A program made the translations under genes and the position numbers. From Oculina patagonica (taxonomy: Eukaryota), in contig NC_135771.1 of assembly GCF_052425735.1 (NCBI RefSeq), positions 21,142,001-21,206,000 of the forward strand: DNA of 64,000 bases, given 5' to 3'. Below the pieces are notes generated by a model that saw only the letters and a list, made by a program, of their open reading frames with translations, was not told the DNA's origin and did not search any database. Below, one piece after another: positions 1-51,074 of this stretch (within the stretch, counting starts at the first letter, position 1; every line of letters begins with the position of its first letter).

Positions 1-118
1 CAGGAGTCGTTGAACAAGTCTTTTCTTTTGACGGGAACATACATCTCCAGCAACACTGAAGTTATATTACCGTCTTGTAGAGCTTTTATCATTGAGTTTA
101 AATCAGGGAACGTGGATC
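1..118 (-). CDS. Exon 39 (partial): S2 lobe, type II periplasmic-binding-protein-like
   Basis: [39 protein letters not shown]; open to window edge. Confidence 0.88.
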
Positions 119-3100
119 CTGCAGGAATGAAGGTCAAGTCACGTGCTATGGTGATAGAATGCGCACTGCGTTGAAACAATTATTTCTACAGAATTCGCGT
201 TTATCAATAAGAATATGACTAATCCTCCACTCACCGATTTCTATCTTGTTTCGGAATTTTTTAACCGCCATCTGGTGTTCAGAAGAGTTAGCGACCACTG
301 CAATCTATAAGGAAAGTAAACTTATCATATTCTGCTCAACAAAACTGTCTCGTAAATAGTTATTTATGAAAATCAGGGGTTTCAAAATGTTTTGAAGTAG
401 ACGTCAGCAACTTGAGGTGTGGGCGGCTGTGACAATGCTGAGCTTGTTTGCCACAATGCAAGCTGATTACTATGAAAGAGTAAGCCTTCTCGCAGTCTCG
501 ATTTCTTTTGCAGGGCTAAAAAGGTCTCGGACTCGCAGAAAAAAAAAAACAGTCTCACCGTCTCGCAAAGTCTCGCATTTACCATTCGCCACCCCCTATA
601 TAATCAAGTAGCCGGCTAAACTCAGGCAGTTGCCGAGCTTGTCTCGTTTTCTCTGTTGAATACAATACAATACAATACAATACTTTAATTTGACACTCCC
701 CTTACGGGGCTTTTCAGTGACAATAAATTACAATAGAAATAACAATTTTAAAATTATAAAATTACAATGGTAAACATTACAATGATAAAACATTACAATG
801 ATAAAAATTTGGATAAAATGAATTACTCCTAATTAATCTATGTTAAAAACTCCTCCATTAATTTTGAATGACATGACAACACTAAATTAGCTCTGGTATG
901 CATGTTTTTGTCAGACAAGCTACTTTCACCTCGAAGCCTCGCTTTGAAAGTGCAGTTTGAAAATTTTGTCATGAACTATTTCCAAGAGCAGCAAAGATAA
1001 AAAGAATACGAAAGTAAAAACAGTATGAATATGCGAGAGGTTTGAGGATGAATTTGAGCCACAAACGTAATCATGCATAATGTCCATAATACCTTGCTGT
1101 CAGCAGCACCTGTGGGACTCACACCATTTGAATTCATTGAAATGACTGTAACAGTGAGCACTGATGCCAATGATCCCATGAAGATAGCGAAAATAACGAG
1201 TCCAATAAGAAACCAGGCCATTGCAAATATCTTGGCTGGCATGGATTTTGGACAGCGATCACCGTACCTGTGTAAAAAATAAATTCCTTTTTCCCATGTT
1301 TAACAATTGCTGATTGCTGATACAGTTTGCAACATGTAAGAGCTGATAACTTTTTAGAAGCAGCGAACTCCCATTGTAATGATCAACGAGTCAATTTTCT
1401 AAAGTAAAGTAAAGTAAAGTAAGCGACTTTGAACGGCTAAAAACAGACTCAAAACAGACGTGTATTCATTGTGCATGGCCGTTCAGCTCCATTATCTGAG
1501 AATTACTGGTGTCAGGTTTCATCGACTCTCCATATAAAGGCGGACACCTCTCTAAGACGGACAGTTAGGGCAGGTCCCGAAAGTGTCCGTCTTAGAGAGA
1601 GTTGACTATATTAACCAATATAGTGAGGCTGCCAACACATATAGTTACGCTCTACAGGAAGTCACTTTTTTTCTGTCATCAGTACATAACATATATATCC
1701 TGCGATGTACGCAGTATGCCATAGGTGGGAGTGTGCTTACTAAAGACTTGTCCTACAACGCTGCACAACAACAACGAAATGTGATTTTTTTGGTTTACAA
1801 TTTGCTAAATACTAAAACAATAATCCTGCTTAATCTTGCAGAGTATCTTCTGATTTGAGCGAACTCGGTATACGGCCTCGTCAGCTAGGGTTAGCTAGGT
1901 ATCAGGCGATATTCTGCTCGATTTTGCAGGATGTTTGTCACAAGAAGGCAACAAAACCCGAGCCAACTACCAGAAACTGACAACGAACAGTATGAAGAAG
2001 ACATTTGGGACCGTCCAAGGGCACTCGCTTAAAAGATGTAGATTATTTCGTTTATTACTGCAAGGAGGTGGTAATTCTGGATCCGTTCTGTAATTTTAAC
2101 TCACCCCACTGTGGAAAAGGTAATAACAGACCACCAGAGGCCTTCACCAACTCCCTTGAAAAACGTTCGGGGGAAATGTTCCTGATTGGTTCTGGAGTCC
2201 TGCGAGGCAAGAAAAAATAACTTCAGTTATGCACCGACAATAAGCCAATAGAGTAATACAGTCCATTGAATTTGATCGCCCACATGGGTCACTTTCACTA
2301 CTCAAAATTATATACAACCTTTTCACCTTCCGAGACAAACCTCAAAAATCAGTGCAGTTTTAAGAGAATAAGACCATTCAAATGAAAGCTGTTGAGCAAT
2401 ACTTTTCGGTGGCTAGTGGTGGATATCTGATTCACCTCGCCGCTTCGTGGCTCGGTAAATATCCACCACTAGCCACCTCTACTTTGGTAAAGTTGTTAAT
2501 TATACTGTACAAACTGGCACCTTTCAAGTCTTTAGAAGAAACTCCCACGTATAACCATTCAAATGAAAGCTTTTTAGCAGTACATTCATGTGGTTTTGTT
2601 AATTATGCTGTACAAGGGTGTTTTATAGCTTATAGGTAGGAGTATAGATTCCTAGTGTACGTATGCCCATTCAAATTCATGTTATTTAGTAGTACGTTTA
2701 GAAGAAATGATTGTCTTAAATTTGGCACGACTTGGAATGCAAGTCAGTCAATCAATCAATACAATCTTTATTCAGTGATCAGAATGCACGCTTAGCTAAA
2801 AAGCTAGTTAGCAGGTGCGTACACCATGAAATAAAAATACAAAAAGAAAAAGAAAACTTCTTTGGAAGTGAATAAATTAAGTTAAGCTATAATATACATG
2901 AATCATACAGTAATCGTATTAGCTCACCAGAATCCAAATGATAATTCCCGCTAGAAGAGCTGTTACCAATGTGAGAACGAAAATTGGCCAAAACTCAAAA
3001 ATGGAGTTTGCCATAACTTTTGTTAGCAAACCGCTATCAGTGCTTTTCTTCTGAATAACCACAATACCAGGGACAGTTATAACCGGAATGAACTTGCTGT

Positions 3101-6100
3101 ACTCCGTGTCACCATAGGCCTGGGTCTTGATTACTGGAAAGGACACATGGTCTCCCTTGGAGCTGCTGTAGGAGACTAACTTCGTGTCATTGTGTTCTTC
3201 ACATGTCCCGCACGTGGTGGTCACAAGGTCACTGATGATACTTGTGAGCGAGTTAAATCCTGATGATTCTAATGGACTTTGAACTACGGAGACACTTAAA
3301 TGCTCCGTGCATCGACAAGTTTCTGAGAAGAATTCAAATTGTCGTTAGTTAGAAAGCAAGAAACTGAAGACAATGGAAAATAAATTATTTAATTAAGATA
3401 TAACTGTTAAAACACAATTAGATTTTATTCCATATGTCCTTTAAATACTAGAGCATTTCTTTTTTTGGTAAATCATAACTGCTGACCTATCTCACCCTTC
3501 AGCGCTAACCCTGGCTTTGAACTGGTCACGATCTTCCTGAACTCTCATTTGAATTTTTTTAGAGCCGGCGTTTCCAAAGTAAAGGCCCTAGCGAATATCT
3601 CTATTGTCATTTGAATACACGTGCAAATAATTTTTAATCACGTTTTTGTTAATTATTGGTCTTGCGAACAGTTCGTGGTTGCCTTTTACGACTATTTTTT
3701 CGTCTAGTGTGCATTTTAGGACGTTCGCGCTAATTTTTTATGCGCATCCCTACTGCGCACGTATTTCATGTCGCAACGCCATGCCACGTCATACTTTGAG
3801 CGCACGCGCTGAGTAAAATTTCTAAAAACATTTAGGTTGGGTTGCCGTTCCGCTTGCTTCGTTTGCAATTTGCTCTCTTAAATGGTCGGTGACCCCTACT
3901 TTTTTCTTAACGGATCACTTTTGTTAATCAGTATCTACGTTTTGCGAGAAAATGAAAAAAATCTATCGAGTGGAAGTTGATTTTGTTGACACACTGACGG
4001 TTTGAATTCTGCTTTTTGAGTTTTCCTTTTTGCCGTACGACAGTTTTAAATACGTTTCTTCTGGGTTTGGTTTTTACCAAAAAGATGGCAAAACTAGGAA
4101 TTATTTACGAAGAGACGCACTTCTACAAAATGTGACTAAGATCGTTAGCCTTCGTTTACTCATCTTCGATATATTTAACTTTAAACCCTGTAAACCATAC
4201 TGAATTACGTGCGCCAATTTTTCAAAATCAGGGTAGTTTTCCACACGCTTTCTCACTGAAACGAAGTCGGTGACCCCAACTTTTTTTGCATTTCTGACAC
4301 AAGTAACTCATTATCTTGCCGCAGTAAAAAATTAAAAAATCTATCGAGTCAGCTTTTAGACAACTTGTCCGTCTAGACGACAAAATCGTCTTCCTGGAGG
4401 GCCAAATCAACGGACAAAAACAGACGACTTTTAGGCCCAAAATCGTGTTCGTCCCGCTTTCACACTACGACGACTTGTCCGTCTCAGATGATTTGTTGGT
4501 CTTCTAGTGTGGAAGCGGCCAATGAGTTTTGATGCAAGGAGCTAGATACATAGATATTATATATTTTTTTTCATAATAGTTAATACCTCCATATACAGGT
4601 TCACTAAAGTTTCCTATCCCGTCAGTTGTTAGAACTGCCACTTGAATCTTGTACATTGTGTAAGAAATCAGATTGGTGAGAAGTATTTCATTTACATCAG
4701 CACAAACTATCGCCGTATAATTTGGCTCAGCAAGTAAGTCCACGATTGGTTCACCTCCGATACGGACGGCTTGATACTTTATGTAAAAACCACCCAAATC
4801 TCCACTCAATCTTTCTTTTGTTCCATGTTCCCAAGTGACCTTAATTGCGGATAAACTCATAGCGGTTGTAGCAGCTGTTTTAGGTGAACTGGTGTCGGGA
4901 GCTGAAAGAAAACAAACGTTACCCATAAATTGGATAACTCTGAACATCAAATAACACAACCCATCCTTACGACATCAAACAGGAGCTCGATAACGAACCG
5001 ACCTTTTCTTTCTCTCAAGCGGAAAGGCTATGTTGATGAAACATGACAGAGAATTATTTAAAACAATAAACGAAACGCATGTCATAGAGCTTCCTGCCTT
5101 TCCTTATAGTACATCCAACTGCTACTGTACTTAAACATATTTTTCCATCAATGTTGTGTCCAAACGGTAATGGACTGGGTGGAAGAGGAACTCAGAGGTA
5201 AGCATATTTGCTAATTTTTAATTCTGCGACTGATTTCTTGATAGGCTACTTGATAGGAGTTCAGTAACCAAGCAGACATACAGATATTTTTGTACCATAA
5301 AACCTCAAAGCAGGATTTACGAATTTTCGAGCAATTGAGCAAATTTTATCGGAATCCGAGCATGCGAGCAACTGCGATTATTTGCGAGCACGAGCTAGCG
5401 AACACTCGTCCAAATTTTGCGAGCAAATCGAGCAAAAGCCAAATTTTTGCGAGCATATTAATGGGGTCTTCAATATTTTAAGGGAAAATTTGATACCCCT
5501 TATATTCCTGATTAAGACATAATAAGGGAAGGCAGTTTTGCCAAATGCAAACAATAATAATATTATTGATACCCTTACTCTGACTAATGACCATTAGCAT
5601 AACCACACTGACCTACTATTGGTAATCGCGCGATCTGATTGGCTACACAGGTGCCTACTATCGATCCGTAGAAGGCTCTCGGAGCGCGCGCGTAGTCTTC
5701 GCTGAATTTTATCAATCAAAACCTTCAATAAATCAATTCTAGCGATATTCTGAGTTTAATAGATCGGTCAGTGGGTTATGCTAACACAATTAGACGGCTC
5801 GCTCTCGGTTTCTACCGGCTTTTGATAGTTGGCTCGGGGCTTCGCCCCTCGCCAACTATCAGCCGGTAGAAACCTCGAGCTTGCCGTCTAATTGTTAAAG
5901 AGAAGACAAAAGCTGAACTCACCAAAATTAATTTTTGTACAATTAGTCAGTGGACCAATCCCATTTTTGTTAATAACAGCCATTTGAATACACGTGTCAC
6001 TCGACAAGTTTATATTCTTTAGCTCGATTGACGAAAAACACGGAGCTACAAACCAGACACCATCAGATCCATTTACAAGCACTGCGTATCCTACAAGCTC

Positions 6101-9100
6101 TCCATTAACATCACCCTCGGGGACTGGGTCCCAGGATAAAATAACAGTGCTGTAATCAGGGCTGAACGCTGAGATGTTGGTAGGAACCGCTGATGGTACT
6201 GCAGATTCAAGGGATTAACACCGTTTGGTATAACAAGAAGTCATTTTCGATCGCCAACACCTTTACAATACCATTTTTTGAAAAAAAAGAATACTTTTCT
6301 CAGAGAACATTAAACTGCTTGAAGCAAAAATTAAAAAAAAAAAAGACAAAAGAATATAGAATAGTACTTACACAAAAGTGCAAGGATGCTTAGAATGAAA
6401 TTGAATTAATGTAAATGGCTTGCGAACTCTAAGATTGATTTTTGCTCCGTCAAAACAAGAATTAAAGTGTTAAAATTACGTTTAGCAAAAAAATATCAGT
6501 GACTTTGATTGCAATTAAAATTATTAGAGTTTGTGCTCACGAGCTAGATTTATGTTGTTTTAATTATTTTTTCCTACCAATCACCACTAACTTGCTTATT
6601 ATCAAATATTTTTATCTTTCATGTTTTTACCGCATTCATCGGTCATCGCGGTCGTGCAGCGACCATAGGACCCAGTCCCGTAACTGCTGACTGCCTGCAC
6701 GGACAAACAGTACTCAGTACAAGCATCCAAGCCTGTCAACACAACTGTCACAGTTCCTGGAGGAAACGCCTTTGTTTGGTATGACGGAATCGTTTCGTTT
6801 TTCCAGAAACGAACATTGTACCCAGTAATTTCATACGCGGCATAGTATGATTGCGGAGGAGTGAAACTAAACTGTATGGAAGTTCCGTTAACGCTAGGTG
6901 CGTCGTGAATTTTGGGTGCTCTTGTTGGCGCTGAAAAGATAATAACGGCAAAGCATTAAATTAGTTATTAATAAATAGGAATAAATGAATCTCGTATATA
7001 AAACCAGCAGGGCGTGGTCTTGGTTGAAAAATAAACTTACAATTGTTTTTTTTTACATCACACACTTACGCACAAACACACAGGGAAGCAAAACAATTAA
7101 ATAAGTCAAGTATTATTATACTGGACAAGAACATTGCTGTTGAGATACTGTCTTTTGAGACAGACAAGTCACTCGTCCTTTCAGAAGGTATGCCAAATAC
7201 AAAGGACGAATTTTTGTAACTTGATATAACATGCTTAAGAATTTTAACTGGCAGGACACGGTTGCTGAATGGACGAAACATAGCCCAAGAACTCGGGCAT
7301 TAGCTTGCTAAGTAAAAACATAAAACAGAAATAATTAAACGTTCACAGTAATAGGTTCCCGGTAGGGGGGGGGGGGGTACACAAAAAAGTTTTCTACGGG
7401 GAGGCTTCGCCCCGAGCTCTAACCCCTTACCCTTTTATATACCATTTTGACAGAAATTGTACCCCGTTCGTATACCTTTTGCTGAAAAAAGGTACCCCTT
7501 TCATATACCTGAAAGACATGGCAAAGACTTAAAAACACGACGTTTTCTTGTCATTTTCATGTAGCGCTAAAGAAAGGTTAAGTTACACATTACTGACGTG
7601 GAAATGGTTTTGCTGGTATGCCATAGATCTCCAGTCTCATGCAGGGTGACAGATGCCATTCTTTCGGGTAAAACCGAACAAACTGCGCCACTACATCGCC
7701 GTTTAAGTAATTCCTCTTTGCACGATGGTAGTTACCAGCAGTATAAAATTTCTGTGAAACAATAACCAACGAATTAACAGTTTATATAACAAGAACCGGT
7801 AAATATACTGCCTTAATGTACATGTATAACATGATACATTTGTATACCGTTTATGTATCAATGCTTGTGATCAGACCCTTTTCATTAAAATTAAGGTTGT
7901 GGTCATTTTAAGTATTAACACGCAAATTCCCCATGCCGCAGGAAACTCCTTGCTACCCGGGGGGGGGGGCACTTCCTATAAATGGGCTAATGGGGATGTG
8001 CCGCTGGATGGGGTCGCATTTTCACGACTGGACTGACTATAATGGGGTCGCCATTTCAAGCATTTTTTATAGGGTGACTAGAATGGGGTCACACTTTCCG
8101 GGATTTTGAGAGTACGAAAATCTGGCAAGTTGTGATTTATGAACGGAAATATTCGCCGAAAAAAATGTTACCGTATTTATTGCTGTTGTTCAATATTTGA
8201 CAAACAGCTCCCAGAAAGTGACTAAGTTGGGGTCGTAAAAATTAAATTTACCCAAAAGTGACTAAGATGGGGTCTATAATTGGCCATAGAATAAGACTAT
8301 AATGGGGTATGGGTTCTGAGAGGCCAGCGGCACATACCGAACAAAAATTTACCCAAGTACCCCCCCCCCGGGCTTGCTACCTCTCTAAGGCATTTATTGA
8401 TAGCGAATTTTCTACTTCTGCCATCAACTTTCTCCAGGGCAGTTGTGACTGAACGTCCTTAACACTATTTCCGTTAAAAAGAACGTTATAAAACACAACG
8501 TTAACGTGTTATTTTAATCATAAGATTATACCCTCTCGAACTCTGTCCAATGTGTTCCATTCAGTGATAAATGGATGGCGAAACGTGTCACGTGACTTCC
8601 ATCTACGTGACCTTGTGTCGCTACTGCTATCACGTGGTAAGGAATACCAAGGTCAACTTGAAGAAAAGGATTGGTTAAGTTCAGTGGGCACCAGGCCACG
8701 TGCGAGCCCAGCCGAGCAGCCGCTGGAGGATTGGATTCTATGTATGACGATGCTGATATGTTGATGTCTGGCATGGCACCAGTTTCCAGTCCCAGGGCTT
8801 TTTCCCAGCAATAAGCGTCGTTACGGTAAAACCCTGATAGATAATATAAAAAGACTAAAATTAGTCATGATAATTCATTCAAAAACAGTAGGTGAATGCA
8901 GTCCATATAACCTTAAACCCACTATTAAGAGGGGATTTTCAGGAAAGGAGGATTTACTTGTCAATCAGCAGGTAACGGCGTAAAATTTATCGTCTTTGAG
9001 GTCAGGATATATAGTATTATCAATTTACAACTGTGACAGTTTAATTTACATGTTATCGAAGACCTGGAAGAGAAAGTTTGAAATATTGTTAGGCTTATGC

Positions 9101-12100
9101 AGTGGACTTAAATTTCGAAAAAATACAAAAAGGTCGCTAAAGCTCTAGAAACAACGTGCAAGTTTAAAATGCTGATCAGATGGTGTCGTTCAGATTATAT
9201 TTCTCCCAATTGCAAGTAAAAACATTATGCGCAATCGAATGTCGAGAAACGCCGACACTCTTTTATAGTATTTGATTACCACTTTTCAACTAAAACTAGA
9301 TGACCGAACTACACAAATTTTTGAGTTGATTAGCTTTGAGTTAGAACTTCAGAGCGGTGACTGAAAGAATTTCTTTAAAAAAAACTAATGGCATTGGCCA
9401 AGAGAGGATTACTTTGGTAGAAAAGGAATTACGAAAGCATATGCGGATAAAATCAAATTAACCCCTCCCTTTCAAAAAAAGACCTTCATGACCGTCATAC
9501 CTTTTCTCTTGCAGATGTAAGGTAAAGATTGTAAACAGTTTACAACATTCCAGTGACCTTGCACACTTGCACTCTTCGCCACACAAGCAATTCCATTTGG
9601 AATACCCTCTGTCGGGTTTTCGTACCAGTTAGTATAATCAAGATAATGCCCGTTACTCCAGTTCGGAAATCTTTTCAAGTTATTCTCATCTTCTATGAGC
9701 CCAATAAACACCTCGTTAATTGTGGACCTGATCATTTCTGAGTCAATAAACGCTTCTTCCTCGACGTTTAGTATATACAGTAGGTCTGCGTTTCGGTTCA
9801 AGCAGTCAATTTCGGCGTTGTACCAGTTAAGAGGATTCTCTTCAAGGATCAGGTAACAATTCGTTTGGAAGAAAATCCATCCCGGCAGACAGTCTTAAAA
9901 ACAAATATTAAACACAAATAAACATTTGATATTTGAAGTACATGACTATGATACTTCTTTTCTACTTACAACAAAATGCTTTACTATAACCGATTATATA
10001 GGTCCGATTATCCAGTAATTTAAGATCAATGGTTGATGTTTTTAAGGTAACCAAAAGTCATAATTGTTTACGGACTGAACGAAANNNNNNNNNNNNNNNN
10101 NNNNNNNNNNNNNNNNNNNNNNNNNNNNNNNNNNNNNNNNNNNNNNNNNNNNNNNNNNNNNNNNNNNNNNNNNNNNNNNNNNNNNNNNNNNNNNNNNNNN
10201 NNNNNNNNNNNNNNNNNNNNNNNNNNNNNNNNNAGGTATTTAGCTTTAAAAAACTAATTGGGGACATTATTTACATTAAAATCTACTAAGCTACATAAAG
10301 TTAAAAATATTTACACTTAAATTCTAAGAAAAAAAACCGTACTACATAGATGAATAGATAAATAAATGAATAAATAAAAAAATGAGAATAAAATATAAAA
10401 TTTTATAATAAAAGTAGGTATGAGTGACTGGACGTAACACTATATAACAATTGCCCTGCATTAAACCTGTGTTGCGGAAAAAGATAAAATACTCAATTAA
10501 GTTGGTAGCCGGCAGCAGCAGAGGACCATTGTGGAGGACCCGGGCTGCCACTTTGGGCACCTAGTATAGGGGAAGGTAATTCGTAGTCAAAAATAGTTGA
10601 GAAAGTTAAAGAAAAACGTCGATCAAAGGAACAATCAGGAATATATAGAGACTTTTTAAAAGAACTATTACTAACACCAAAAGTGATACATAATATTAAT
10701 TTACATGGAGTTACTTTGACAAGCTACATGCATATAGCATTAAAGAATACGTTTCACTTTTAGAGGAAATCATACTGTCAAGCTTGCACCGTTGGGAGTC
10801 TAGAAAATACTGCAACTTCGGTTTGATTGGTTAAAATAGATAATGACTGCAGTAAATATGCATCCTTACAGATCTTCCGTCTTCCGTTCGTGTTTTTTTT
10901 TAAAAGTATAGCCTTACCTGGAGATGTCGTTACTTTAGTGCAGTTGTTGTGTTCAACATCGCCAAGTTCATTGTAAATGAGAATTTTGACACAATACGTG
11001 CTATTTCTCTCCAAGCCAGCGACTGTGTAATTTGTAGTATTTCTTTCAACTGTTATCGTAACTTTAGTTTCATCAAGTACTCCTTGTTCTGTGATGCGTT
11101 GGTAAATTATTTTATACCCAGTCAGTTCTATAGCTGACTGACAAGGCAGGCTGTCCCAAGAGATCTCGAAGGAGTGGCTTCCGATGTTGTGTACTTTGAT
11201 GTCAGTAATTACAGGTGGCCATACTGAAGAACAACAATAATATCATATTAAAGGAAAACAGCTGCATGAAATAAACGTGAATTTCGGTTTTTCCCTCCTT
11301 GAGTTATATCACAACTACACCTAAAAAGATCGGATTCCCACACGGCAATCATGTAAAGCTGTTGTAATTAGTTTTAGTTTTTTTCTTAAGCTTAACTAAC
11401 TGAAATTAACTGACTAGCAGGATCGATTTTTTTGGCTGTTCTAAACATAGTAGCCATGAAATATGCTAAAAAACTTTTTTAGTTTTAATATTTTTATTCT
11501 GAATGTTTATTCTAACTTTTTAACATTTTTCAGTATTGCCTAATCGTCTTACCTTTGGGCATTTCACAAATGAAAGCTCTAATGCTGTTTTCACTAAGAT
11601 CGTTCAATAGGCCTTGTGTATTCTGCGGAATATCCTTTGACATCACCGTCACATTTCCGTTACCAGATGGCTGCCCACCTTGCCATTTACTGATCGTCAG
11701 TGGTCGTCCGTTCACCCACGTCCAATTCGCCCCGATTTTTGTCAAACCTATGTGCCATTCGCGGGGTTTCGCAATGCAACGTTTTTGAATCTCTTCATTG
11801 ATAAACTGCCATTCTTTCTCTGTTTCCATGGTTACTAGGTCGCCTCGTTTACCTTTGCAGGTATCTCGGTTCTCGTTCCATGTTTTGCCTGACTCCGTAA
11901 ATGAGTAGCAGGAATCCCCAAATAATACATTTCCGCTTTCTATAAAAAGAACAGAAGGATTTAACTCCATGTAAGCAGCAACGTCAATGAAGCGCCAGTA
12001 AAGCTCATGGAAAATTAAAAGTACAATTGCCGGTAGTAAATTCTATAGGAGTCTAATGGCACAGAAATGCCGGAGTGCAACCTGGTTTTTGTGGCATAAA

Positions 12101-33100: not shown

Positions 33101-36100
33101 TGCTAATAGTTTGCCCGTGTGCAAAACCGTGATGCCACCTGCTCCAACCCTTAATGAATCCCCTAATTAGTAGATAGAAATTGTGGAGGAGAGTTTAAGA
33201 AATATGTGGAAAATTAAGTTTTGAGTTTCAAATATGGGTAAGCATGCATTTGTTAGAAACTAAAACTAAAAGAACGTTCTTCAGCAAGAAATAACAGGAG
33301 GTACTGGGGCAGTAGTAGCATGCAGCATCTTAACTTAAGATTGGTTGTTTGGTTATGAATTGTTGCGCGCAAATTACAACAAAAGAAATAATCTCTTATG
33401 TCTTTTGGGCGGTAAATACCGGTAGATTTAACTAAAGCTACTGACATACAAATATAACGTGCATTCCTCGTCCGCCATATTGAGATATACTATTGAAGTT
33501 CTTGCCTTTTTTCAACGTTGTGACGTTGACACATGCGCTCAAAGCTCCGTCTGCTACAGTGTAGGCCAGCAACTGAACACAGTAGTAAGTATTGTGTACA
33601 AGGTTTGATACTTCCAATGTCGTCACGTGGGCATCTACAACTGACTCGTGCTCTATGATCTGGTCTGCATTTTTTACGTACACTTTGTATCCCCGGACTA
33701 TACCGTTCCTTTCCTGCTCTGGAACCTCTTCCCATGTGATAAATATCGTATCGACTGCTGTTGCCGTGACTGATATGTTAGCTGGTGGTGCAGAAGGCGC
33801 TAAAAGAAATAGTGTTATAAAAAATGTTACTGTAGCGACAATTTTTTTTTAAAAAAAAAAGACAATCTGTCAGTCAATCAATCAATCAATTAATTAGGCA
33901 GTCAGTCTGCCAAGGCAATCAAACGATCCATCGAGCACTCAAGCAATCATTAATCCTGAAACATCCACCCAATTTTTAATTGATAATAGTTCACTCTAAT
34001 ATTAATAATGGTAATAGGACTGAGTGGAGTCCAATTCGGTCTGTAATCATACGAGTGATTAACAAAATCGGACGACCGCGAAGCGGGAGTCCGATTTGTT
34101 TAATCACGAGTATGATTACAGACAGAATTGGATGACACGAAGTCCAGTTACCAATTAATCAAAACTATGACAAAATTTGAGAAACAAATTAAACTAATCT
34201 TCGGTTAAATGGTTAAACGGTTTTATAAAAACTGAAAAACATAACAGTTTACTCAACAAAATGCACAACAACAGCGCGCGCAAAATGACGCGTACTGTCC
34301 AATTACACAGGCATGACGCGTACACTTTCCTATTACACTGTCCAATTACAAGCATGACGCGTACACTGTCCTATTAGTGATCAAATCGGGCTGCTGATAA
34401 CCAATCACGTTCGAGAATTTTGTTAAAGTTTTGATTAATGGGGAAAGCACAAACAATATTTCCACAGTCCACCAACTTCATTTGATAAATACAGAATGTA
34501 TTAATATTACGATAGTTGTAAGCTGCACCCATACACTAATCGAAAGTACTTATATCAGACCTTCTAAAGTACTTATCAAAAGGTCAGTTTGACTCAGGTT
34601 GGGAGCACCCGGAATTTCTTTTTTTTCGAGTAAGCTTCTGAAAAACATCATCCTCCACTTTAAAGGGACCGTGTCACGGATTTTAGCCAAACTTAGGCGT
34701 AGGAAATAACCATCAAATTCGCTTAAATATATAAAATAAGCTTTTAAATCAGTGAAGGATTATTAAAATGACACACCAAATGCAAAAGAAGGTACGGATG
34801 GCCAAAATTGTCGAAGATTGAAACGGATTGCGATATGGGTTTTTGAAATATGGTCCGGCGGATCAGTTTTCAAAGTTAATCTTGTCTTCTTGTAACTTTA
34901 AATTATAACGCCCAGGAGACACATTTGGCTGCAATGAAGCTATGGCTTTGTCAATTGGACTCGTAGAATTAATTTCGTTGCAAACATTTAGTATCATAGC
35001 GAATATTTGACAACATTTATTAACATAAAATTAACTTAGCCGTAACACAGTCCCTTTAAGGTCATTGCCCTTCGCCTACTGGTTTATTACTTTAAGGGAA
35101 CTTATATTTTGAAATAAAAAAGGGGGGGCACCAGATTCGTTTAGGAGCAGGAAGACTTTGTATATTCCATATAATTCCTTTAAAATTCCTCTGCGAGTAC
35201 TAGCAAAGTACACGTTTTTAGCGATAATTTATTTTTCAAACACAATACTTGATCTGTTTTCATTTTACAGAAAGAATTTGATCGCTACACCCAAAATATG
35301 AGAAAAAATTGATAGGTCACCAGACTCGTTTACGAGAAAGCGACAATTTACTTACAAACCACATAGAAAAAAGCCGCCATTTTGTTTATGTGCGCTTATT
35401 GCGCGTAAAATTCTGCGCAGTAAGGATGCGCATTGCAATACAGGGCAATGACCTTAATCACCAGGCTCAAAATGTACCATTTTTATTTCCATTATTTCCC
35501 GCATTTTTTACCTACCTAAAAAATTGTGCATATAATCATTCTATTAACATTGTTATCCGAGCTGTGAGCGATTTTTAAGTACACCATTCTTACCATCTTC
35601 GGCTGTAAATGCGCAGACTTCATCACTTTCGTCTCCATACCCTTCTACAGGTCCTATCCTTGTTATCGCTGTTACGGTCACACAGTACTCCTTGTATTTG
35701 TTCAATCTAGTTAGTGTTTTTTCCTGTGCCAAATCTTTGAGAATTATCTCCTCTGTTACATTGTTGTGGTCTGTTCTTTTGATCAGGTATCCTACTGTTA
35801 CATCAGGATTAAAATACGCTCTCCAGTGATCCCAGCGTATCAGTAGTGAAGTTGAACTGGTATTGAACACCTCGATGATCTTCGGTGCATCAGTTGGAAC
35901 TATAAATAAATAACAAACGGTTAGGTAGCTCCTAATGTCAGAGTTCAAAGGGGAGACGTTGTGAGGGTAGAAACTCAACTTTGATGTAGCAAGGGATAAG
36001 GAAAGACTAACGGTACTAATAACGCGTCTTTTCGGGCGTATTTATTTGCAACGAACGCGTATAGCTGTCGCATTTGCTCTTTTTATTGTTTTCAAGCTAA

Positions 36101-39100
36101 AAAGAAAACAATAAAAAATTCAATCGAGGAAATGCGATGGATACACGCGTTTGTTGCAAATACACCCACCATTCATTTAAATACTATCAAAAGCGCGTCC
36201 CCACCTCTTTTCAACGTTGTGACGTTCACGCATGCGCTTAAAGGTCCGTCTGCCACGGTATGGGCCAGTAACTGAACACAGTAGGCAGTGTTGTCTACAA
36301 GGCTTGATACTTCCATATTTGTCACATGGCCAGCTATAACTGCCTCGTGTACAATGACTTGGTCTCCAGATTTCACGAACAGTTTGAATATCCGCACTAT
36401 ACCGTTCCTTTCTTGCAAAGAAACCTCGTCCCATGTGATAATTATCGTATCAAATGCTGTTACAGTGACAGATATGTTAGCCGGTGGCGCTGAAGGTGCT
36501 AAAGAAAATGATATTAAAAACATGTTATTGTACTGAATGTACTCAAACATGTGTTAAGTAATCGCAAAGAGCAATTTTCGATTGAGTGTCGTAAAATCAA
36601 AAGCAAAGCAAACCTCTGTTTCCCGCGCTTGGCAACGGCTACACATTTCCCGCTCTTGCTAGCTAATGACTTCATGTTTTCCACGCTTGGCGTGTTTTAA
36701 CTTTGAGTTTTGATTGGTTCACGGCGTTATTATGGCATTACTACGGTTCTGGTTTCACAAAAGTCATAAAAACCACCCAAGGGATCTAAATCTTGGACAT
36801 GAAATTTTGAAGACTATTGTTTTAGTATTTTTGAAGAAAATGTAACTTTCTGTTTAAACACGTTACAATGAAGGTACTTTTCCATGTAGCGAATTTTGTA
36901 GAGTTTTAAAATTAATCTTCGCCCTCTACTTACCATCTTCCGCAGTAGACGCACAGATTTCCTCGCTTTCGTTCCCAAACCCTTTTCCAATTACTGCCTT
37001 CACGGTCACACAGTACACTGAATATTTTTGTAATCCAGTAACTTCTAGTTCATCTTCCAAGAAGCTGACGTTGTGGTTCGTTGATATACCACTGCTGTTT
37101 GTTATGTTGATCACATATCCGTTTGTCGCACCAGAAAGAGAAGATTGCTTCAAGTGTCCCCAGCGTATCAGAAGAGAGGAAGAGCTGGTACTCAAAACCA
37201 GGAGATTTTCTTCTGCGCCGCCTGAGCCTCCTCCTCCTCCTCCCTCCTCCTCCTCCTCCTCCTCCTCCGCTACCAGAAGCTAACGAAAGATAAGGGTTGA
37301 CTCAGGTTATGAAACAATGTTTCTTTTTACATTGGTGGATTTAAGGGATGGTCCGAGTGCGGCCCCCTCCCCCTTCCCTTATTAACCTCCACTTCGGACC
37401 CCCCCCCCCCCAACGTTTTCGAAGCAGGCCAAAAAATGGTCCATCCCCACTACGAGACTCTCCCCCTCCCTCCCCCGTAAACACCTCTAGATCCGCAATT
37501 TTTTCACCTTTTTAATAAAAATAATTTAACGATCTTTGAAATAGCCTAGATTGAATTGGATGTGCTTCTTATCCCGGTTCAGACACATACATGTTACATT
37601 TAATTTTAATTTAAATTAAATCGTATTCACGTGCCGATATAAAGGTATATTCTTGATTTCGACAAAAGAAAAAGAAAAAGAACATTTATATAAAGGAAGT
37701 AACTTGATCTGCAATGTGACAACAATATAGTTGATATCCATCAATCTTCTTGGAAAATATACGAACTACCCAATAAAAACCGAAACCGTATGATTTCCGC
37801 ATTCTGGGAGAAATACACAAACTGTAGAGACAAAATTACGAACGACAAAACATCCTTGACTTTAAGTGCTTGACGCCACATTCGTAAAATTACTTGCAAA
37901 AAATTCTTTGTTTCCCTTCTATTACAACATCCACTCTTGTTTTCGGTAATTTAATAACTTACATTTGCCTGGCTCTCCATAAACTTTGAGACCCATACAG
38001 CTCGCATTCGAATGAACAGGCCAGATACGAATCGCTGACGTCGTTATGTTGGCATCTATGAGGTAATTTATCTTACTGGAGAGAGGATCATCGTATGAGT
38101 TGCCCTTGAAAACCTGCAAAAAAATAAATTATATGCGTACATTACTTCGCTTTCATGGCTTAGTATTCCTTTGTAGAAATCATTCTACGTTGGTCTCTGC
38201 TTTTAAATTCAGTTTTCTATGTCAAACCGATTACATCGCTATTGATCCAACGTATACCGGTAGGATATTGTAGACGGTTGCTTGCTTGAACATTCAAAAA
38301 GAGAAGTACTCAACTGGCTCAAATAGTGGTTGCATTACTTCATTCGAGTCCACAAAGGTTAAGTATGTTTTCGGGGGTACTTGAAAATGTTTGGATGACA
38401 GTGCTCGATGGGGACTATGAACCTCTACCCCCCCAAAAAAAAAAAAAATCCATCTCAAAATCAAGAGTTAAATTGTATACTCAATCTCAGACCGGAAGTG
38501 AAGAGGATGTTTTTATTTTTAAATTTTGTCCACAATACTTCGACATCCGCTTTTTATTTTCGCACGTACTTTTGGGTAAGCATTCCCCATTCAGCGACCC
38601 CATCTCAGGCTAAAAGGCCATCATTGGAGCCCCATCACAGACCCAGTACATACCCGTATAGCATATATAAGGGAGCACCCCCCCCCCCCCCCATTAAAAA
38701 AGAAGGAGTACGGTATGTTCCAACGCAAGAGGATCTGGTGGCTAAAATCCAATAAGAAGAAGTGTAATGACTCCCCTGTATTGAACGCTGGTGATCCTTT
38801 CAGCTTAGGATGTCCCAAGAATTCGTCTCTACCCATTTTGGCGAGGGGGCAAATTATTTTCTTACCCTGGGCATTATAAAATATTATTATTTGCAAACTC
38901 ATACAAAACCTTGCCACGTTTTAAGAACAAAAACGTTCAAACTAGGAAATACCAAATGAACTTACTGTTGCGTTCCCAGATGCATTGTAAAATTTCCATT
39001 CACTGCAATTGGCAGAGACTTCTTCAAAAAACTCAATACGGAACGAAGTGACGTATTTCGTTTCACCATCTGACGTTTGTATGCCTTGAGTTTCAATCGC

Positions 39101-42100
39101 ACATATGTGATACGGAACTGTGAAGTTTAGCTCTATATAAGATGTCGCTGATTCGTTGAAGCACCACACAATTGTATCATTCTCTAGGACTGGCTGTTCT
39201 TCGGTGGGATGTTCAGGCAGGATGGAAGCATTGAATGGAATGGAAAAACTGGTGACGTTGTCATTGGTGAGGTTGATGTGATAAGCTTTACAAGAATCTG
39301 AAGAAGAGTAGCAATGTTTAGGTTGACGTCTGCAATACCGGTTCCTAACTATATCCACATAAATGCACGAAAACACGTTTCGTTTAACCACCACCTAGGA
39401 TTGATTTTTTTTTTTTACCAACGAAAGGGGCTATTTGCTCCAAACAAAACGAAAAATCTGTATTTATTTTATTTCATCCCTATTTATCTCACTTATAGGT
39501 AACGTTTTTTACCACCGAAAAAGGGCTATTGCCCGAAACGCCTGGTTTCTTTTTTTTTTAAAGAAATCTTTTTTGGCACTTTCCATCCCTATTTTATTTC
39601 ATTGAGTTTAGACAGCCTACATTACTGGTTGATTAAGGCAAATTAACCGCCGTTGCGAATTGAAAAGCTGACGTTTTGAGCTTTAGTCTCCCTTCGTCGG
39701 AGCAAAATAACTTTGTTACTTTTCCAGTTGACGCCTTTACCAGCATAACTTAAAAGGAAAGTAAGTTGGGCTCCACCATTAGAAAGATGTTTAAGATTCG
39801 ACCCGAACAATTCCATACTAATGACGTAGTTAAACAGAGATCCGTGCAGTGTTTCCGATTGGTTGTTACTTGCGGGCGAAAATTCAAAAACCAAGTAACA
39901 ACCAATCAGAAACACCACACAGTCCTCTGTAGAGCTACGTCCCTAGAATGGAATTTTTCGTGTTGAATCTCAGACGGCTCTTAAGCGGGAGAGGGAAGAT
40001 GTAAATGTAAATAAGCATTACCCTAGACGTAATGCTTATTTATAATTTGGAGTCCTTAAGCACTTTCAATTAAACTGATCAGACGATGAAACAAGTCATT
40101 ACGGTAATACACGTGATATTGAACAACGTTACTGATTATTAATCAATAATTACCAAGTTCACAAGGAAAAACCCCAATGTTACAATCCTGGGACTCGGTT
40201 AATTTATAGCCATCAGTTGAATAATTAAATATTGACGGGTAAATAAGACACGAGCGGTTACGAGTCTGTCTCCCATCAGGTCCGCAAGGCGTGCTGCAAG
40301 ATGACCAGGCCTCCCACTCACCCGGATGTAGAGTACCGTATGATCCATCTAAATAGACAAACAGACAAAATGAGTTGACAAAATAAACTTAATCAGAACT
40401 GTTACAATTCAAACTTAAGGGTATATGATTTTATCTAAATAAGCACAAAAAACGCCTAATAACAAAATACTGTAACAAAAACACAACTACACTTATGAGC
40501 ATTTTAACTTTATATCACAAGACGACTTACTAAAAATAAGTTTCGAGTCTCAAATAATGCATCACACCTTGTCGGTTTGCTTGTAAACTGGATATCTGAA
40601 TATGTTTTCGTTTCGTTTGGAAAATACGCTAAAATTCACTCCATAATCGGGCCCTGAGCCCTGTTTTTACACTTTCTTCTCTCTCTTTTTCTACTTATAA
40701 CAAAATGACCTGCTTTATGCAAATTTAGCAAAAGAAAAACATGTTTACCCTTCTCTCATCCTCACGTGCCAATGCCATTGAGCCTGCGTAAGGCGTGTTT
40801 GCATATCAAATAAGAGGAATGTTAGGGACGGACCATTAGAAAAGTGATAGGGGGGGTGGGGAATTTTCGGCTTGCACGAATTTTTTTTTCTGTCCATTTC
40901 TTGTGCAGGAATTTTTTTTTCGGGTGAAACCCTCTGCTCGAATTTTTTTTAGACAAATGTTTTTTCTTCTTCAGACAAATGCCATGTATTGCTACTTTAT
41001 ACGTCAATGTTTTTGACAAATGTTGCTTTGTTGATTATTTGCTTAATAGTTTAAATATTTTAAAAATGCTGTTGCTCATTGATTTCATCCGTTAGGGACT
41101 GTCAATAAGTACTGAGAGGGGGGGGGGGAGGGGTGAGAGGGTCAAGGGGCGGTGCAATTGGAAAAGAAAAATATGTGACCCACCCCTTCCTTCTAGCTCA
41201 AAATTGACTGACCAAGCCCTGATCGAAGGTTGGAAATAAACATGATTCACCCCTTTTTACAAAAAACAGTTAGTAAGGAAAAAGTCTTTTTGATTGTCTG
41301 TAATGGATTAGAGGTTTTTGAATTGACATCAGCTTTTAAAGTGCGATCTCAATCATACACCACCCTGTGTCCTATATCCATAATGGACACTGTGATTCTA
41401 TGTACATCTTCTTTCGGTTCTTAACACACCAAAGCGGGATGAATTTCTCACTTCGTATAACAGATTTGTGTTTTTCACATATTTCTATGTAAAGTCCGTG
41501 GGAAAACTTAGACATAAACATATGCAAAAACTAAAACAAAACGTAATAGAAATTCAGTACTAATTACTGCAGAAATCATATTTGACAGGAATTGACAACA
41601 GAAACTACAACCACTGTACCATTCATCTGTTTGAGAAATGAGTTAACTAGTAAGCAATCTACGCAGGCTGGAGAGAGACGAGCTAAACGAATTTTATGAT
41701 CAGAATCTATCTAGGGGGGTCTGGGGGCATGCTCCTCCAGAAAATGTTGAAATTTCTTATGCTCGGAAATGCTATTTTCAGCGTTCTCCACCATATATTT
41801 CGTCGAATAATTGATCTCATCAAGTGTTAAATGATGACAGGTATTTTCAGAGCTTATTAGAACCTTTCCTTCTGCACGAATTTTTTTCTTTGCCTTCCCC
41901 TTCGCACGATTTTTTTTTCTTACCATTTTGGCTTGCATGAATTTTTTTTTGTTTTCCCCCCCCCCCCCCACCCCATCACTTTTCTAATGGTCCGTCCCTT
42001 AGGGCGGCTTTGGAATGGGATATCCGGATCTAGATTTTGAGATCGGGGCTTCGGATCTCACAATAAAACACAATATCCAAAAACGGATGTTGACTTACCA

Positions 42101-45100
42101 AAATCTTTCTCCGAGGTGGATTTCAATTAAAAAAAAATCCAAGCTGGGATGTAATGGATTTGTTATTGTGCGGGGGGAGGGGGGGGGAGATTTCAGTGCG
42201 CCAATCAAGGTTGTCTTTCACGATAATAGGCCTGATCACGGTTTTCGACGCCATCTTGACGAGTAAGCAAAGCGGGTAGAAATTACAGTGTTTGTATGGG
42301 AATCCGACGGCAAATATCTTTTACAAAAATTGAATTCTGGATAACTTATGAATTGTAAAGTTAAGATACTAGGGAAAAGTTTTTATTCGCCGAGTTTGAA
42401 GGATGTAGCTGGGCTAGAAAGCGTTCAGTTACGTTTCCCATATATTTGTCTGTATTTTTTCTGCAGATTTACGTTCCGGTTCGGTGAGTTGACGCGGTTC
42501 GCGGGAAAAAAAATTATAGACAAATGTATGGGAAATTAAAAACGTATAAACTGAATGCTTTCTAGCCCCGCTACATCCTTCAAACTTTTCAATTCATAAA
42601 AGATATTTGCCGTCGGATTCCCATACAAACACTGTTATTTCAACCCGCTTTGCTACTCGTCAAGATGGCGTCGAAAACCGTGATAAGGCCTATTTCATGG
42701 CAATCACTGCGCACAAACATAAATGGGAATTGTCAATGTACTCCAAAGGACCTGTAGTAGAGTTTTGTTATTCTAGGTGCGTTACACAAGCGTGACCACA
42801 GGTCACGCCATTAGGGTATACATTGCATTGCATTGTAATTGAGCCCTATAGGGGCTAATGTAACTCGTGGTCTTTCGATAGCGTTTTGAAGTGTGTTTAT
42901 GCATTGTACGTGGAGTTGCGGAGCTAACCCGCGCTCGTTACCGGAATAAACACCTGGAAAATCCGTTTAAACTGTGTGCCGTGGTTTCCTACGAATTCCC
43001 ACCGCTACAGACCCAATAGGCTCCTTTTGTCTTCCTGTCACCAAGATGAGCTATTAATTAAAACAGTTTATTTTACTTAGTTTTGCTTACCTTGTTGGTA
43101 CGCGACAAGTTGTTCCCTGGGTACTAATATCGTGCTGTTATCCCTAGGACCTTTGACCTTAAGATGAAAGTGACCATCCGATTCCCCCAGTGGGTGAAAG
43201 AGAAGAACTTCAATGAAGTAGGTGCTTCCTTCGGTAAGGTTTGCGGATGAGTTTGCTCTGAATTAAGAAGTGAAAATAATATTAAAAATATCGATTTCAA
43301 ACACAAGCAGCGATTCCAGTGTTCTGATTGGTCCACTTAACCCACAACATGACTGCAATATAGTTTACAAAGCCATGGCAAATATGTTATATACGCATGG
43401 TGACCAGTTGTGGAGAAAATCATCGTAACTTTATTACTCCGATGGTTTTTAAAAGGTGGAAAGAGGCACTATGAGAATTTTATATGATTTCATGAGAGTT
43501 TTATATGATTTTATATATTCATGATTTCATATTCATGTTTCCCGGGTATATTACGAGACAATTTAATAACCAGCTCCCAGTTGGCTTGGTTAGAGCTGGT
43601 TAGAGCGCTGCACCGGTATCGCAGAGGTCAGGGTTCGAGTCCCGGCAAGCCTGATTTTTTCAGGCTTTCTTTTCGCAACTGCTTAAGTTGCGTTCTTAAC
43701 TGCGAGCTTCTTCTCTTCATTTTTTAACACTTACTATGCTTACAATATTTACGAAACTTTTTTTAGCAGACTAAGGCTACGATTACACAGTGACGCTACT
43801 ACTACGTACACAATAAGGCTACATTACTTCTACAATGCTACATAACAAAAGGAAGGCCAGAAAAAAGCGAATAAAAAATAGAATGAACTAGAAACAAAAA
43901 AAATAAACAAAACAAACAAACAAAAGAGGCTCAAAGACTTATTTGTAATTTGGATTTATGTTTTTTTGCTTACACTTCTTGCCGGTAAAGTACAATTTTG
44001 AAACTATACAGAAAACGAGACAAACAAAATTGATTTACTTACATTTTAAAATCCTGTTGTGGCATACCAAGACTCGAATTTCCTCCAGTGATTTTAAGTC
44101 CGCTATTTTCTGATGCCTTCATGAACCATTCACAAGCTCCATAGCATGAGAAATAAAACTCATTTACCCCAGTTAAAGAGCACAGAAAAAATGTTCGCAT
44201 GCGGAAACCAAGTGACATCCCTACCGCCCAGGTTGGCACAGAGAAATCATTCATTTCGTAGATGCTGGATTCATCAGCTTCTCTTCCCATGTTTGTAAAG
44301 GTTCTCAATTCTTCCAATGAATTTACCGAATTCCATTTTTCTATTAGAATTCCTTTGACGGCTGTGAAAACACATAATTAGTTTAATTAAAATTAATTGG
44401 ATACCCTGGGGAAGTACTTCCTATAATTTACCAGTAACGGGAGACTCTATCCGAAAGGGCTCCTTTTTCGGCTGTAGGTCTATAAATGAGTAGATATTGT
44501 AGAGAATGCTGTCGCTTAGGTATTTAAAACGGCCCCACTGAACAGATGTTGGGTTCCTGTTGAATAGTTTCGGCAGTTTCAGTAGTTCGATGAATGTTTC
44601 GTCGAATAAAGTCGGTGTTGTAGTTGTTTTTGTGGAAAAAGCGATCAATGTATTTGTTTTCACACTATACGAACTAAAGATTTGCTTATTTTTTTAAAAA
44701 AAAATTGCGTTGCAACTTGTCTCTCAACGTTCCGAAAGTAGAGAAGAGTTCTACTTTTCATGTAACTTGCAACGTAACATTCTGTTACATTGCAGGTTGC
44801 AAAAATAGGATGTTACGAGTAAAATATTTGACAACTGACACTGCAACGTTTGTTGCGTTGCCAATTGCAAGAAATTAGAAACATTGCCTCGTGGAACGTG
44901 GCCTTTAATTTTGATTTTTTTTTTCTGTACAGTTTAAACCGTAATTCATGGCAAGCACCACAAATATCATAAATATCAAAACGCACAAGAGAAAATAACA
45001 CTTACATTCTGGAACGCATGAGACATTGTAGAATGTATAACATGTTGGAAGGTATGACAGTAGCGTCAGCGCTGTCTGAAAACAAAGTAAAATATTTCAG

Positions 45101-47377: not shown

Positions 47378-47460
47378 TTTCTTTTCATATTTTTGATACC
47401 TGTTACGCACGCACTTTCGTTAACTTGAAATTGATGACTTGGATCATGATAATTTATTTA

Positions 47461-50180: not shown

Positions 50181-50296
50181 ACCCTGCCAGTAGGGCCTCT
50201 TTTATTAAACTTCCCTGTGTCTGAAATTTGGGAAGTATATAAGTGGAAAAGACAGGGCTCTGCTTGCAGGGAGAAATTAAAACATGAGAGAATTAA

Positions 50297-51074
50297 GGAC
50301 GGTGCCTACTAATAACAAAGTATTTTTTCCCGGCCGAAGACTATGCAAGAAATGTAGATGTTACCAAGGGCTACTGAAATTTAAAAAGAAAATTGGGGGT
50401 AGCCACGCAAATTTTCGAGATAATTAGGTTTGAAATCTGGAAAAAAGTGCTGACGTGGCATTTTAAAATAAAGTTGAACTAAATACAATTTCCTTGCAAA
50501 TTCCATTTGAAATTGGTTTTTCATGAACGAAATCAACATTAAATATAACAATCTTTACAATAACTAACAAATAACATGTGCTCTATAGACTTACCACTTA
50601 CATTTTATAAAATAAAAAGTAGGGGTCACCACGCGTTTTTAAAAGTTATACCAGTTGTTTTCAGGTTCTATGAAATCGCTTTTGGGGTCTGTTACATTTT
50701 TCCTATCCCCTCCCTAGCGAGTTGAAGATTTGCATCTCGCGCGTGCACTACGCCATTTGTCACGGTTAGCAGTTTGCGGGTAACGTTTTAGCGCTTAGCG
50801 ATTTATTTTTTACTGTTAATGTGAGCCATTTTCAGTGGTAAGCGGTCAATGGTTACTGATATGTTGATTTTCCGCTGTTCCTGGCTTAGGATATGTCCAT
50901 AAACTGGATTTCGTCGCAGAGAAAACTTTCTTGATTTTTAGTCGCGCGCTTGTTCGCGTAGTTGAATTCGTCATTTTGAGCGAGCAAATTAATTAAAAGC
51001 GCGCGCGCCCAGTGTGATCGATGCATTGCGTGATGCGCAGAACAAGCGCGCAGTAGCAATAGGAGGCACCGTCC
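50297..51074. mobile_element. Non-autonomous DNA transposon with TTAA TSD (Kolobok-like), inserted in the satellite tail
   Basis: TTAA|GGACGGTGCCT...AGGCACCGTCC|TTAA. Confidence 0.88.

Follow-up and report, generated by a model that had tools for sequence, protein, structure and literature searches.

A coral gene joins a giant adhesion-type ectodomain to a channel module with a K+ filter and the layout of GluR0 and ionotropic glutamate receptors

The DNA analysed here, henceforth referred to as the window, is a 64,000-nucleotide stretch of the Oculina patagonica genome (contig NC_135771.1, positions 21,142,001 to 21,206,000), eukaryotic in character and with a GC content of ~38%. Its minus strand carries a gene in which an array of ~23 extracellular domains is followed, in the same reading frame, by an ion channel module with the order S1, M1, re-entrant pore with the filter TVGYGD, M2 and S2. 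The ectodomain and the channel belong to one gene and one transcript, which is expressed. The encoded protein has a length of roughly 3,300–3,400 amino acids (aa); the window accounts for ~3,140 aa of these, and the coding sequence for the C-terminus continues past position 1. The interpretation favoured here, with modest confidence, is that an adhesion array has been spliced onto a K+-filter module of a cnidarian family resembling ionotropic glutamate receptors (iGluRs), in which a small amine-bearing ligand would be the trigger and the ectodomain would anchor or position the channel.

RNA evidence was obtained from Logan contigs of four RNA runs placed on window positions 1–5990 and 6500–12490. 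Spliced contigs carrying two species labels support 13 consecutive junctions (12922/11939, 11553/11223, 10918/9893, 9501/8833, 8532/7751, 7598/6930, 6631/6198, 5923/4901, 4587/3322, 2928/2199, 2105/1267, 1093/304 and 235/118), and all joints read CT..AC on the plus strand, equivalent to GT..AG on the minus strand. Two of the 13 are indirect: 6631/6198 was derived from contig coordinates plus GT-AG, and 12922/11939 from a loose end at 11940. The latter is the reverse complement of HVPFAEI, the end of the predicted exon 13075–12922, and this match confirmed the junction. The contig from run X1 (2,007 nt) contains discoidin 7, fibronectin type III (FN3) domains 9–11, S1-M1, the pore, M2 and S2, while the contig from run X2 (3,456 nt) contains C-type lectin-like (CTL) domain 2, FN3 8, CTL3, discoidin 7, FN3 9–11 and S1-M1, and extends further upstream. 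The RNA-confirmed exons translate as a single stop-free frame of 965 aa running from FN3 8 through TVGYGD into S2. An assembly gap of Ns at 10085–10233 sits within the intron 9894..10917; the joint 9893/10918 falls at adjacent contig positions 2143 and 2144 with GT..AG in both X1 and X2, so the contig is continuous across this intron, the gap hides no exon and the frame is preserved.

The initial annotation, made from the letters alone, had FN3 11 splice in phase 1 straight into S1. This junction, 4587/3322, whose absence from transcripts had been named there as the refutation of the fusion, is spanned by the spliced contigs of both X1 and X2 with 255 letters on either side. Bare channel paralogues do exist and the contigs are assemblies rather than single molecules, and an adhesion gene and a bare channel gene might thus have been joined by read-through, chimeric contigs or mis-assembly. 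Such an artefact is very improbable, since the joint is a precise in-phase GT-AG splice seen in two runs with two species labels, no stop, signal peptide or start codon lies between FN3 11 and S1, the same order is kept in the other species, and RefSeq models from Nematostella and Hydra show comparable fusions.

The remainder of the gene was modelled with a small splice-aware dynamic-programming gene finder trained on the confirmed exons, all 12 of which were recovered. Small exons were overcalled at a low intron penalty and real exons were lost at a high one; predicted exons were kept only if paralogue structure, phase and splice scores agreed, and the upstream part was curated by hand. The resulting minus-strand model, from 44361 to 1, contains 38 exons, all bounded by AG/GT and consistent in phase, and encodes 3,119 aa without a stop. 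Addition of a conserved upstream exon at 45075–45006 brings the total to 39, which bears out the earlier description of 39 exons in one frame of more than 3,090 aa. FN3, thrombospondin type 1 (TSP1) and lectin exons run from phase 1 to phase 1, and discoidin domains are split into exons of phase 1 to 0 and 0 to 1. In a 19-residue hydropathy scan only M1 (2.82) and M2 (2.56) exceeded 1.6, in accordance with the earlier statement that neither a stop nor a transmembrane (TM) helix precedes M1.

The S1 lobe and the M1 helix, with CxC, CGxC, FPV and PG motifs, are encoded at 2928..3322 on the minus strand and were established by RNA and family alignment. The pore helix and the first half of the filter (...FSTVG) follow at 2105..2199 (RNA, translation); the YGD half, M2 and the start of S2 at 1093..1267 (RNA); S2 exon a at 235..304 (RNA); and S2 exon b, containing the acidic site LLEMY and running off the window, at 1..118 (RNA). 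The division of the filter as TVG/YGD at junction 2105/1267 is seen in RNA. Pfam Ion_trans_2 scored 26.0 bits on the M2 exon alone, above its cut-off of 22.5, compared with 49–54 bits for family members, and Lig_chan scored 27.6 bits on the same exon against a cut-off of 30.8, compared with 23–38 bits in the family.

With the S1-M1 exon as query, a full HMMER scan returned 158 relatives. When the channel portion of Nematostella protein P0058 was used in a word-indexed search, only 3 proteins were retrieved; a profile search with an alignment as query was far more productive and returned ~90 proteins at 197–535 bits, every named one cnidarian, after which the scores fall to 76 bits, the level of ordinary K+ channels. 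The named genera are Hydractinia, Clytia, Rhopilema, Xenia, Dendronephthya, Actinia, Porites, Pocillopora, Acropora, Montipora, Orbicella and Oculina. Full-length members consist of a signal peptide, a Cys-rich S1 (CxC, CCGxC, FPV, PG), M1, the pore segment FWWAFVSMTTVGYGDKxPK and an M2 ending in FTAxLTTxLT; these are followed by an S2 of alpha/beta type, in which D-x-Y and YG are conserved, by a third TM helix and by a helical tail. TVGYGD and the pore helix are invariant family-wide, and the window protein matches each family motif within its reach. The third TM helix and the tail are present in the orthologue and in all full-length members, and the window itself ends within S2. The lobes are placed outside the cell by the N-terminal ectodomain and by the signal peptides of bare members.

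The module belongs to a multigene family whose N-termini differ, being bare, FN3 arrays or CUB plus Ig, with fused forms in Nematostella, Hydra and Acropora. In Nematostella, XP_048584343 carries nine FN3 domains plus the channel under the database name PTPRQ-like, and FN3 plus channel is found in XP_032219778 (uncharacterized LOC5519070) and XP_048583376 (sidekick-1). Hydra XP_047138624 (uncharacterized) combines CUB, Ig and the channel, and Stylophora XP_022793801 is a bare, uncharacterized protein of 497 aa whose cluster-mate PFX23673.1 is named "putative potassium channel protein YugO". These and other database annotations of the family (PTPRQ-like, sidekick-1, cubilin, YugO, Kv) are automatic misnomers. 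Judged from the protein models, the fused adhesion-channel architecture is not unique to the present gene.

The relationship of the module to known channels was examined by profile, structural and genomic comparison. The pore profile is closest to Kv channels (E 3e-15), and the S2 profile matches amino-acid solute-binding proteins (SBPs; AncQR, 2e-4), the bacterial iGluR homologue 2pyy (3e-3) and the ligand-binding domain (LBD) of GluR0, 1ii5 (0.035). Pfam SBP_bac_3 gave no match in ten family members (E 0.001), nor in the S1-M1 and M2 exons of the window (E 1). An AlphaFold2 model of the paralogue P0115, a bare member, reached a pLDDT of 71 overall and 82–92 in the S2 region. The top 50 Foldseek matches of this model are all iGluR chains, mostly assemblies of the LBD and the transmembrane domain (TMD), over ~450 columns at E ~1e-11. 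They cover AMPA, kainate, NMDA and delta LBD-TMD chains and include the M1, P, M3 and M4 fold. This family member is thus predicted to fold like a eukaryotic iGluR LBD-TMD.

A tblastn scan of bacterial genomes identified 370-aa proteins that align to P0115 residues 37–348, spanning S1-M1-P-M2-S2, with 27% identity. They are assigned to the GluR0 type because they carry SBP_bac_3, Lig_chan and Ion_trans_2 together, and they are without a third TM helix. In the pore and M2 (WWAMVTMTTVGYGDKAPKT...FTANITTALT) they resemble the cnidarian proteins to a striking degree, a likeness that could reflect either ancient inheritance or gene transfer. Such 370-aa proteins are located at L006 1402–2514 and L078 1234–2343, both in metagenome-assembled genomes of Desulfobacterales. 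On these alignments, the channel module, its lobes probably included, is homologous to the bacterial GluR0-type K+ channels.

The initial annotation had likened the module to GluR0 (Synechocystis Slr1257). The likeness holds for the order S1, M1, P, M2, S2, for the TXVGYGD filter and for the predicted inverted pore, but not for what follows S2: GluR0 has two TM helices only, and in the cnidarian family S2 is followed by a further TM helix and a cytoplasmic tail. The term "GluR0-like" thus suits the pore and probably the lobes, and the added third TM helix and tail correspond to eukaryotic iGluR topology. Further differences from GluR0 are the Cys-rich S1 of the cnidarian family (CxC, CCGxC), in which the carboxylate-binding Arg is not conserved, and the coral gene itself, which is eukaryotic, intron-rich and endowed with ~2,800 aa of adhesion domains. 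With eukaryotic iGluRs the family shares the predicted LBD-TMD fold including M4, a putative acidic site for a ligand amine in S2, a terminal part of M2 that resembles SYTANLAAFLT and an N-terminal extracellular region before S1. It differs from them in Lig_chan scores that lie around the Pfam cut-off, and the coral protein has a K+ filter instead of a cation-nonselective Q/R/N pore and no amino-terminal domain, FN3 standing directly before S1.

Polycystin-1 (PKD1) likewise combines a huge adhesion-type ectodomain (C-type lectin, Ig-like repeats) with a channel-fold membrane domain in one polypeptide. It differs in its TRP-like membrane domain with 11 TM helices, its GAIN/GPS cleavage site and its type of pore; the likeness is one of analogy, not homology. 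The rotifer AvGluR1, reported in 2011, is an animal iGluR with a K+ channel signature, standard eukaryotic architecture and amino-acid gating (PMC12332018, PMC3483616). It resembles the coral protein in being of animal origin and in keeping the K+ signature within a eukaryotic iGluR transmembrane architecture. Going by its description in those sources, it differs in that the cnidarian family is without a LIVBP-type amino-terminal domain and has either nothing or exon-shuffled modules before S1. A survey of metazoan iGluRs made no mention of K+-filter forms. The earlier view that no characterised animal channel has this architecture agrees with the literature searches, in which no functional description of the family was found, but has to be qualified by AvGluR1, which on the published account is a characterised animal iGluR with a K+ signature.

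The following mechanism is proposed. Four subunits would form a K+-selective pore, inverted in the membrane as in iGluRs, and the S1/S2 clamshell would pull on the M2 gate, whose sequence, in the family (FTAxLTTxLT) as in the window, resembles the SYTANLAAFLT of iGluRs. An acidic residue is conserved in S2, being D in the family and E in the window (LLEMY), and aligns with the Asp of SBPs that binds the ligand amine. Since the clamshell keeps this residue, a small amine-bearing ligand would be the most likely trigger, and the resulting current would be hyperpolarising. Alignment of these positions suggests that a ligand pocket probably exists, although compounds other than amino acids could be what it binds. 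The giant ectodomain would occupy the position of the iGluR amino-terminal domain. Its most likely role would be to anchor, cluster or position the channel, on matrix or on partner cells, with a possible modulatory effect on gating.

Gating could instead be driven by engagement of the ectodomain with glycans, microbes, prey, matrix or a neighbouring cell, transmitted by mechanical or allosteric means through FN3 11 into S1, with the clamshell acting as a mere transducer. FN3 11 does meet S1 without a linker exon, the same module bears different adhesion arrays in different members (FN3 arrays, CUB plus Ig), the carboxylate-binding Arg is not conserved, and GluD receptors provide a precedent in that they require trans-synaptic anchoring of their N-terminal domain to gate. 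Nevertheless, this alternative is considered unlikely. Many bare members keep the clamshell and its acidic residue, which argues that the module has a trigger of its own, and the C-type lectin domains are without canonical sugar-binding motifs. Because bare members share the clamshell, an intrinsic small-ligand trigger was ranked above pure contact or glycan gating. The broader proposal of a cnidarian-specific class of receptor-channels, in which a GluR0-type pore and clamshell serve as the output module of exon-shuffled ectodomains and in which a hyperpolarising K+ current would be gated when matrix, prey, a symbiont or a neighbouring cell binds or pulls on the ectodomain, is considered unlikely.

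Several observations weigh against an adhesion-anchored channel with a small-amine trigger. The S1 profile gave only chance-level matches to solved structures. The carboxylate-binding Arg of S1, found in the PVGER motif of the bacterial proteins, is replaced by K in the window; other family members carry N or G there, and their nearest basic residues are offset by one or two positions. This makes an amino-acid ligand doubtful, and a vestigial pocket is conceivable. The structural model was built from an 11-sequence alignment of the paralogue P0115 and not of the window's own protein. RNA support reaches up to exon 13075, and the exons upstream of it rest on splice sites, phase, colinearity with the orthologue and dN/dS, the ratio of nonsynonymous to synonymous substitution rates. 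No convincing signal peptide was found among the candidate first exons upstream, and the true first exon was not found. Finally, no paper was found on the cnidarian family, its function or its fusion to adhesion domains.

The orthologue was recovered through the S1-M1 exon, whose best database match is a 203-aa fragment with 76% identity on a 187-kb ENA contig from a related coral. On a single strand, 38 kb of this contig is colinear with the window over ~30 kb. The domain order there is two PA14-like exons (PA14a, PA14b), TSP1, discoidin, FN3, FN3, discoidin, CTL, discoidin, CTL, FN3, CTL, discoidin, five FN3, S1-M1, P, M2 and S2. In place of FN3 2, FN3 4–7 and discoidin 2–5 of the window, the orthologue has only one FN3-discoidin unit, and it has two extra FN3 exons before FN3 10 (L001/L002 merged coordinates 23503–23805 and 24720–25019). 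By this comparison, the differences between the arrays are lineage-specific changes within one conserved plan, produced by exon duplication between close species. The orthologue continues past the window end at L001 13570–13860, ~14778–14999 and ~15624–15821, and thereby supplies the remainder of S2, an exon with a clear third TM helix (FFEPSSPYFLKTMVISVALLFLAVLCGLFYQTVCYKR) and a tail exon. A retroelement (Baculo_FP_2nd, then Exo_endo_phos and RVT_1) lies at L001 18545–20612, ~3 kb past the last recognised exon of the orthologue.

Between the two species, dN/dS was 0.33 for the ectodomain (1,759 codons compared) and 0.17 for the channel (281 codons). It stayed at or below 0.54 in every exon and was lowest, at 0.05, in the pore exon, values indicating that all parts are under purifying selection. 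They also bear on a third view of the protein as mainly an adhesion or matrix receptor, with the channel module reduced to a constitutive leak or to a non-conducting, tetramerising anchor. In its favour, the ectodomain, itself under purifying selection, accounts for ~90% of the protein's length, and the S1 lobe has little length and has diverged. The stronger constraint on the channel than on the ectodomain, with its minimum in the pore exon, speaks the other way, as do the invariant TVGYGD and pore helix, since a mere anchor would not retain a perfect filter across Cnidaria; this view is therefore regarded as improbable.

Channels of iGluR shape with a K+ filter are usually seen as bacterial relics (GluR0) plus the rotifer AvGluR1. 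The present results indicate that corals, anemones, hydrozoans and jellyfish retain a large, selectively constrained family of them. It can now be tested whether animals possess inhibitory K+ receptors that are gated by ligands and have the glutamate-receptor fold, how the M4 helix and an N-terminal domain joined a GluR0-type core, and whether an adhesion ectodomain can control such a gate. The bare members of ~500 aa are easy expression targets, and the fused forms are natural experiments on the coupling of ectodomain and gate. Were contact gating to prove true, the protein would be an inhibitory contact sensor without a known counterpart in other animals.

The ectodomain array comprises the PA14-like domain, a TSP1 repeat, 7 discoidin (F58C), 11 FN3 and 3 CTL domains, plus a Pro/Thr linker. 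In the model, the order is PA14-like (two exons), TSP1, discoidin, four FN3, discoidin, FN3, Pro/Thr mini-exons, two discoidin, two FN3, discoidin, CTL, discoidin, CTL, FN3, CTL, discoidin, three FN3 and the channel. Pfam searches of individual exons scored 26–38 bits for fn3, up to 66 bits for F5_F8_type_C and 52–79 bits for Lectin_C. The domain order proposed earlier is supported by Pfam for FN3, discoidin and CTL, but it had missed the TSP1 exon, and its PA14 domain is without a Pfam match.

All exons described below lie on the minus strand. The PA14-like exons, at 44068..44361 (exon a; 49% aa identity to the orthologue, dN/dS 0.41) and 43091..43255 (exon b), are supported by the model and the orthologue. 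Pfam PA14 (PF07691) gave no match on either exon with E up to 1, the exons having been submitted singly and the domain being split across both. In a language-model search, 65 of 100 matches were PA14 clusters, the best with a score of 0.92 and 156 shared features (guide value 170), and the PA14 identity of these exons is treated as a lead only. The TSP1 repeat at 40154..40348 matches Pfam TSP_1 with 25.8 bits (cut-off 21.6) and is 85% identical in aa to the orthologue, with a dN/dS of 0.12. Discoidin 1 consists of exon a at 38966..39297, with a weak F5_F8_type_C match (E 1.4e-4, 22.4 bits, below the 28.2 cut-off), and exon b at 37963..38113, supported by the model, the orthologue and dN/dS.

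Pfam fn3 matches were obtained for FN3 1 with its poly-Glu/Gly linker (36934..37269), FN3 2 (36205..36498), FN3 3 (35594..35899) and FN3 4 (33491..33799). The FN3 1 exon opens with eight Glu (37215–37269) followed by a Gly-rich stretch, a low-complexity linker for which the acceptor is at either 37269 or 37212. Discoidin 2 follows at 31875..32206 (exon a, Pfam 65.7 bits) and 30794..30932 (exon b, Pfam), and FN3 5 at 29194..29484 (Pfam fn3). The two Pro/Thr-rich mini-exons of the linker, at 27705–27658 and 27511–27476, are predicted only. Beyond them lie discoidin 3 (exon a, 25819..26141, Pfam; exon b, 24063..24201, model), discoidin 4 (exon a, 21934..22274, Pfam; exon b, 21622..21760, model), FN3 6 (20221..20514, Pfam), FN3 7 (17969..18262, Pfam) and discoidin 5 (exon a, 16335..16663; exon b, 15413..15551; both Pfam). 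Array copies of FN3 and discoidin share 66–85% protein identity, and 79–92% DNA identity over the exons only, the introns having diverged. Assembly duplication was rejected as a source of these copies on this ground, and the copies are therefore real paralogous units.

CTL1 (14284..14652, Lectin_C 79 bits) is followed by discoidin 6, with exon a at 13290..13615 (Pfam; alternative acceptor 13651) and exon b at 12922..13075 (RNA junction to 11939). CTL2 is encoded at 11553..11939 (RNA; Pfam 52.5 bits), FN3 8 at 10918..11223 (RNA joints) and, beyond the gap-bearing intron, which is spanned by an RNA joint, CTL3 at 9501..9893 (RNA; Pfam 55.5 bits). The array closes with discoidin 7 (exon a, 8532..8833, RNA and Pfam; exon b, 7598..7751, RNA), FN3 9 (6631..6930, RNA), FN3 10 (5923..6198, RNA joint 4901/5923, contig coordinates plus GT-AG) and FN3 11 (4587..4901), which enters S1 in phase 1 through the RNA joint 3322/4587 of X1 and X2. 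The lectin fold assigned by the initial annotation is upheld by the Lectin_C scores, but the canonical sugar-binding motifs are not there: an intact EPN or QPD paired with WND occurs in none of the three CTL domains. CTL1 is without EPN or QPD and has WSD for WND, in CTL2 QPD has become QPS and WND has become LND, and CTL3 has WNV in place of WND. Ca2+-dependent sugar binding therefore cannot be assumed.

At the 5' end, the exon at 45006..45075 (minus strand, phase 0 to 1, acceptor and donor read) is the sole strongly conserved upstream block, with 84–86% DNA identity to the orthologue, while the surrounding sequence does not align. It possibly encodes the end of the signal peptide. The start ATG originally placed at 47377 was discarded on two grounds, its lack of conservation and its phase conflict with exon 45075–45006: the orthologue aligns weakly there, without an ATG or an open frame, and the best donor of the ATG segment is phase 1, whereas the exon requires phase 0 entry. 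The protein nonetheless very probably carries a signal peptide, by analogy with the bare family members, which have one.

Just upstream of the gene, 47460–50300 is a long satellite-like tandem array in which minus-strand frames read repeated FHFEFPHVLTSP-type units and the AT skew reaches 0.57 at 48–50 kb. Further upstream, window positions 53844–55974 have 70% DNA identity to the start of the orthologous contig (L004 106–2252), within which a 338-aa gene is called on the opposite strand at L004 323–1339. This block is probably a conserved upstream neighbour gene.

Several intronic stretches of the window (401–600, 1401–1800, 5600–5990, 7300–7700 and 7900–8500) have RNA depths of hundreds to thousands, compared with 10–44 in exons. 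These stretches also show many loose ends and odd joints and look like dispersed repeats or transposon-derived transcripts. In run X8, which carries a third species label, a variant joint 1266/2111 was observed with 7 other letters between and several substitutions; it probably represents the orthologue of a diverged species, not alternative splicing.

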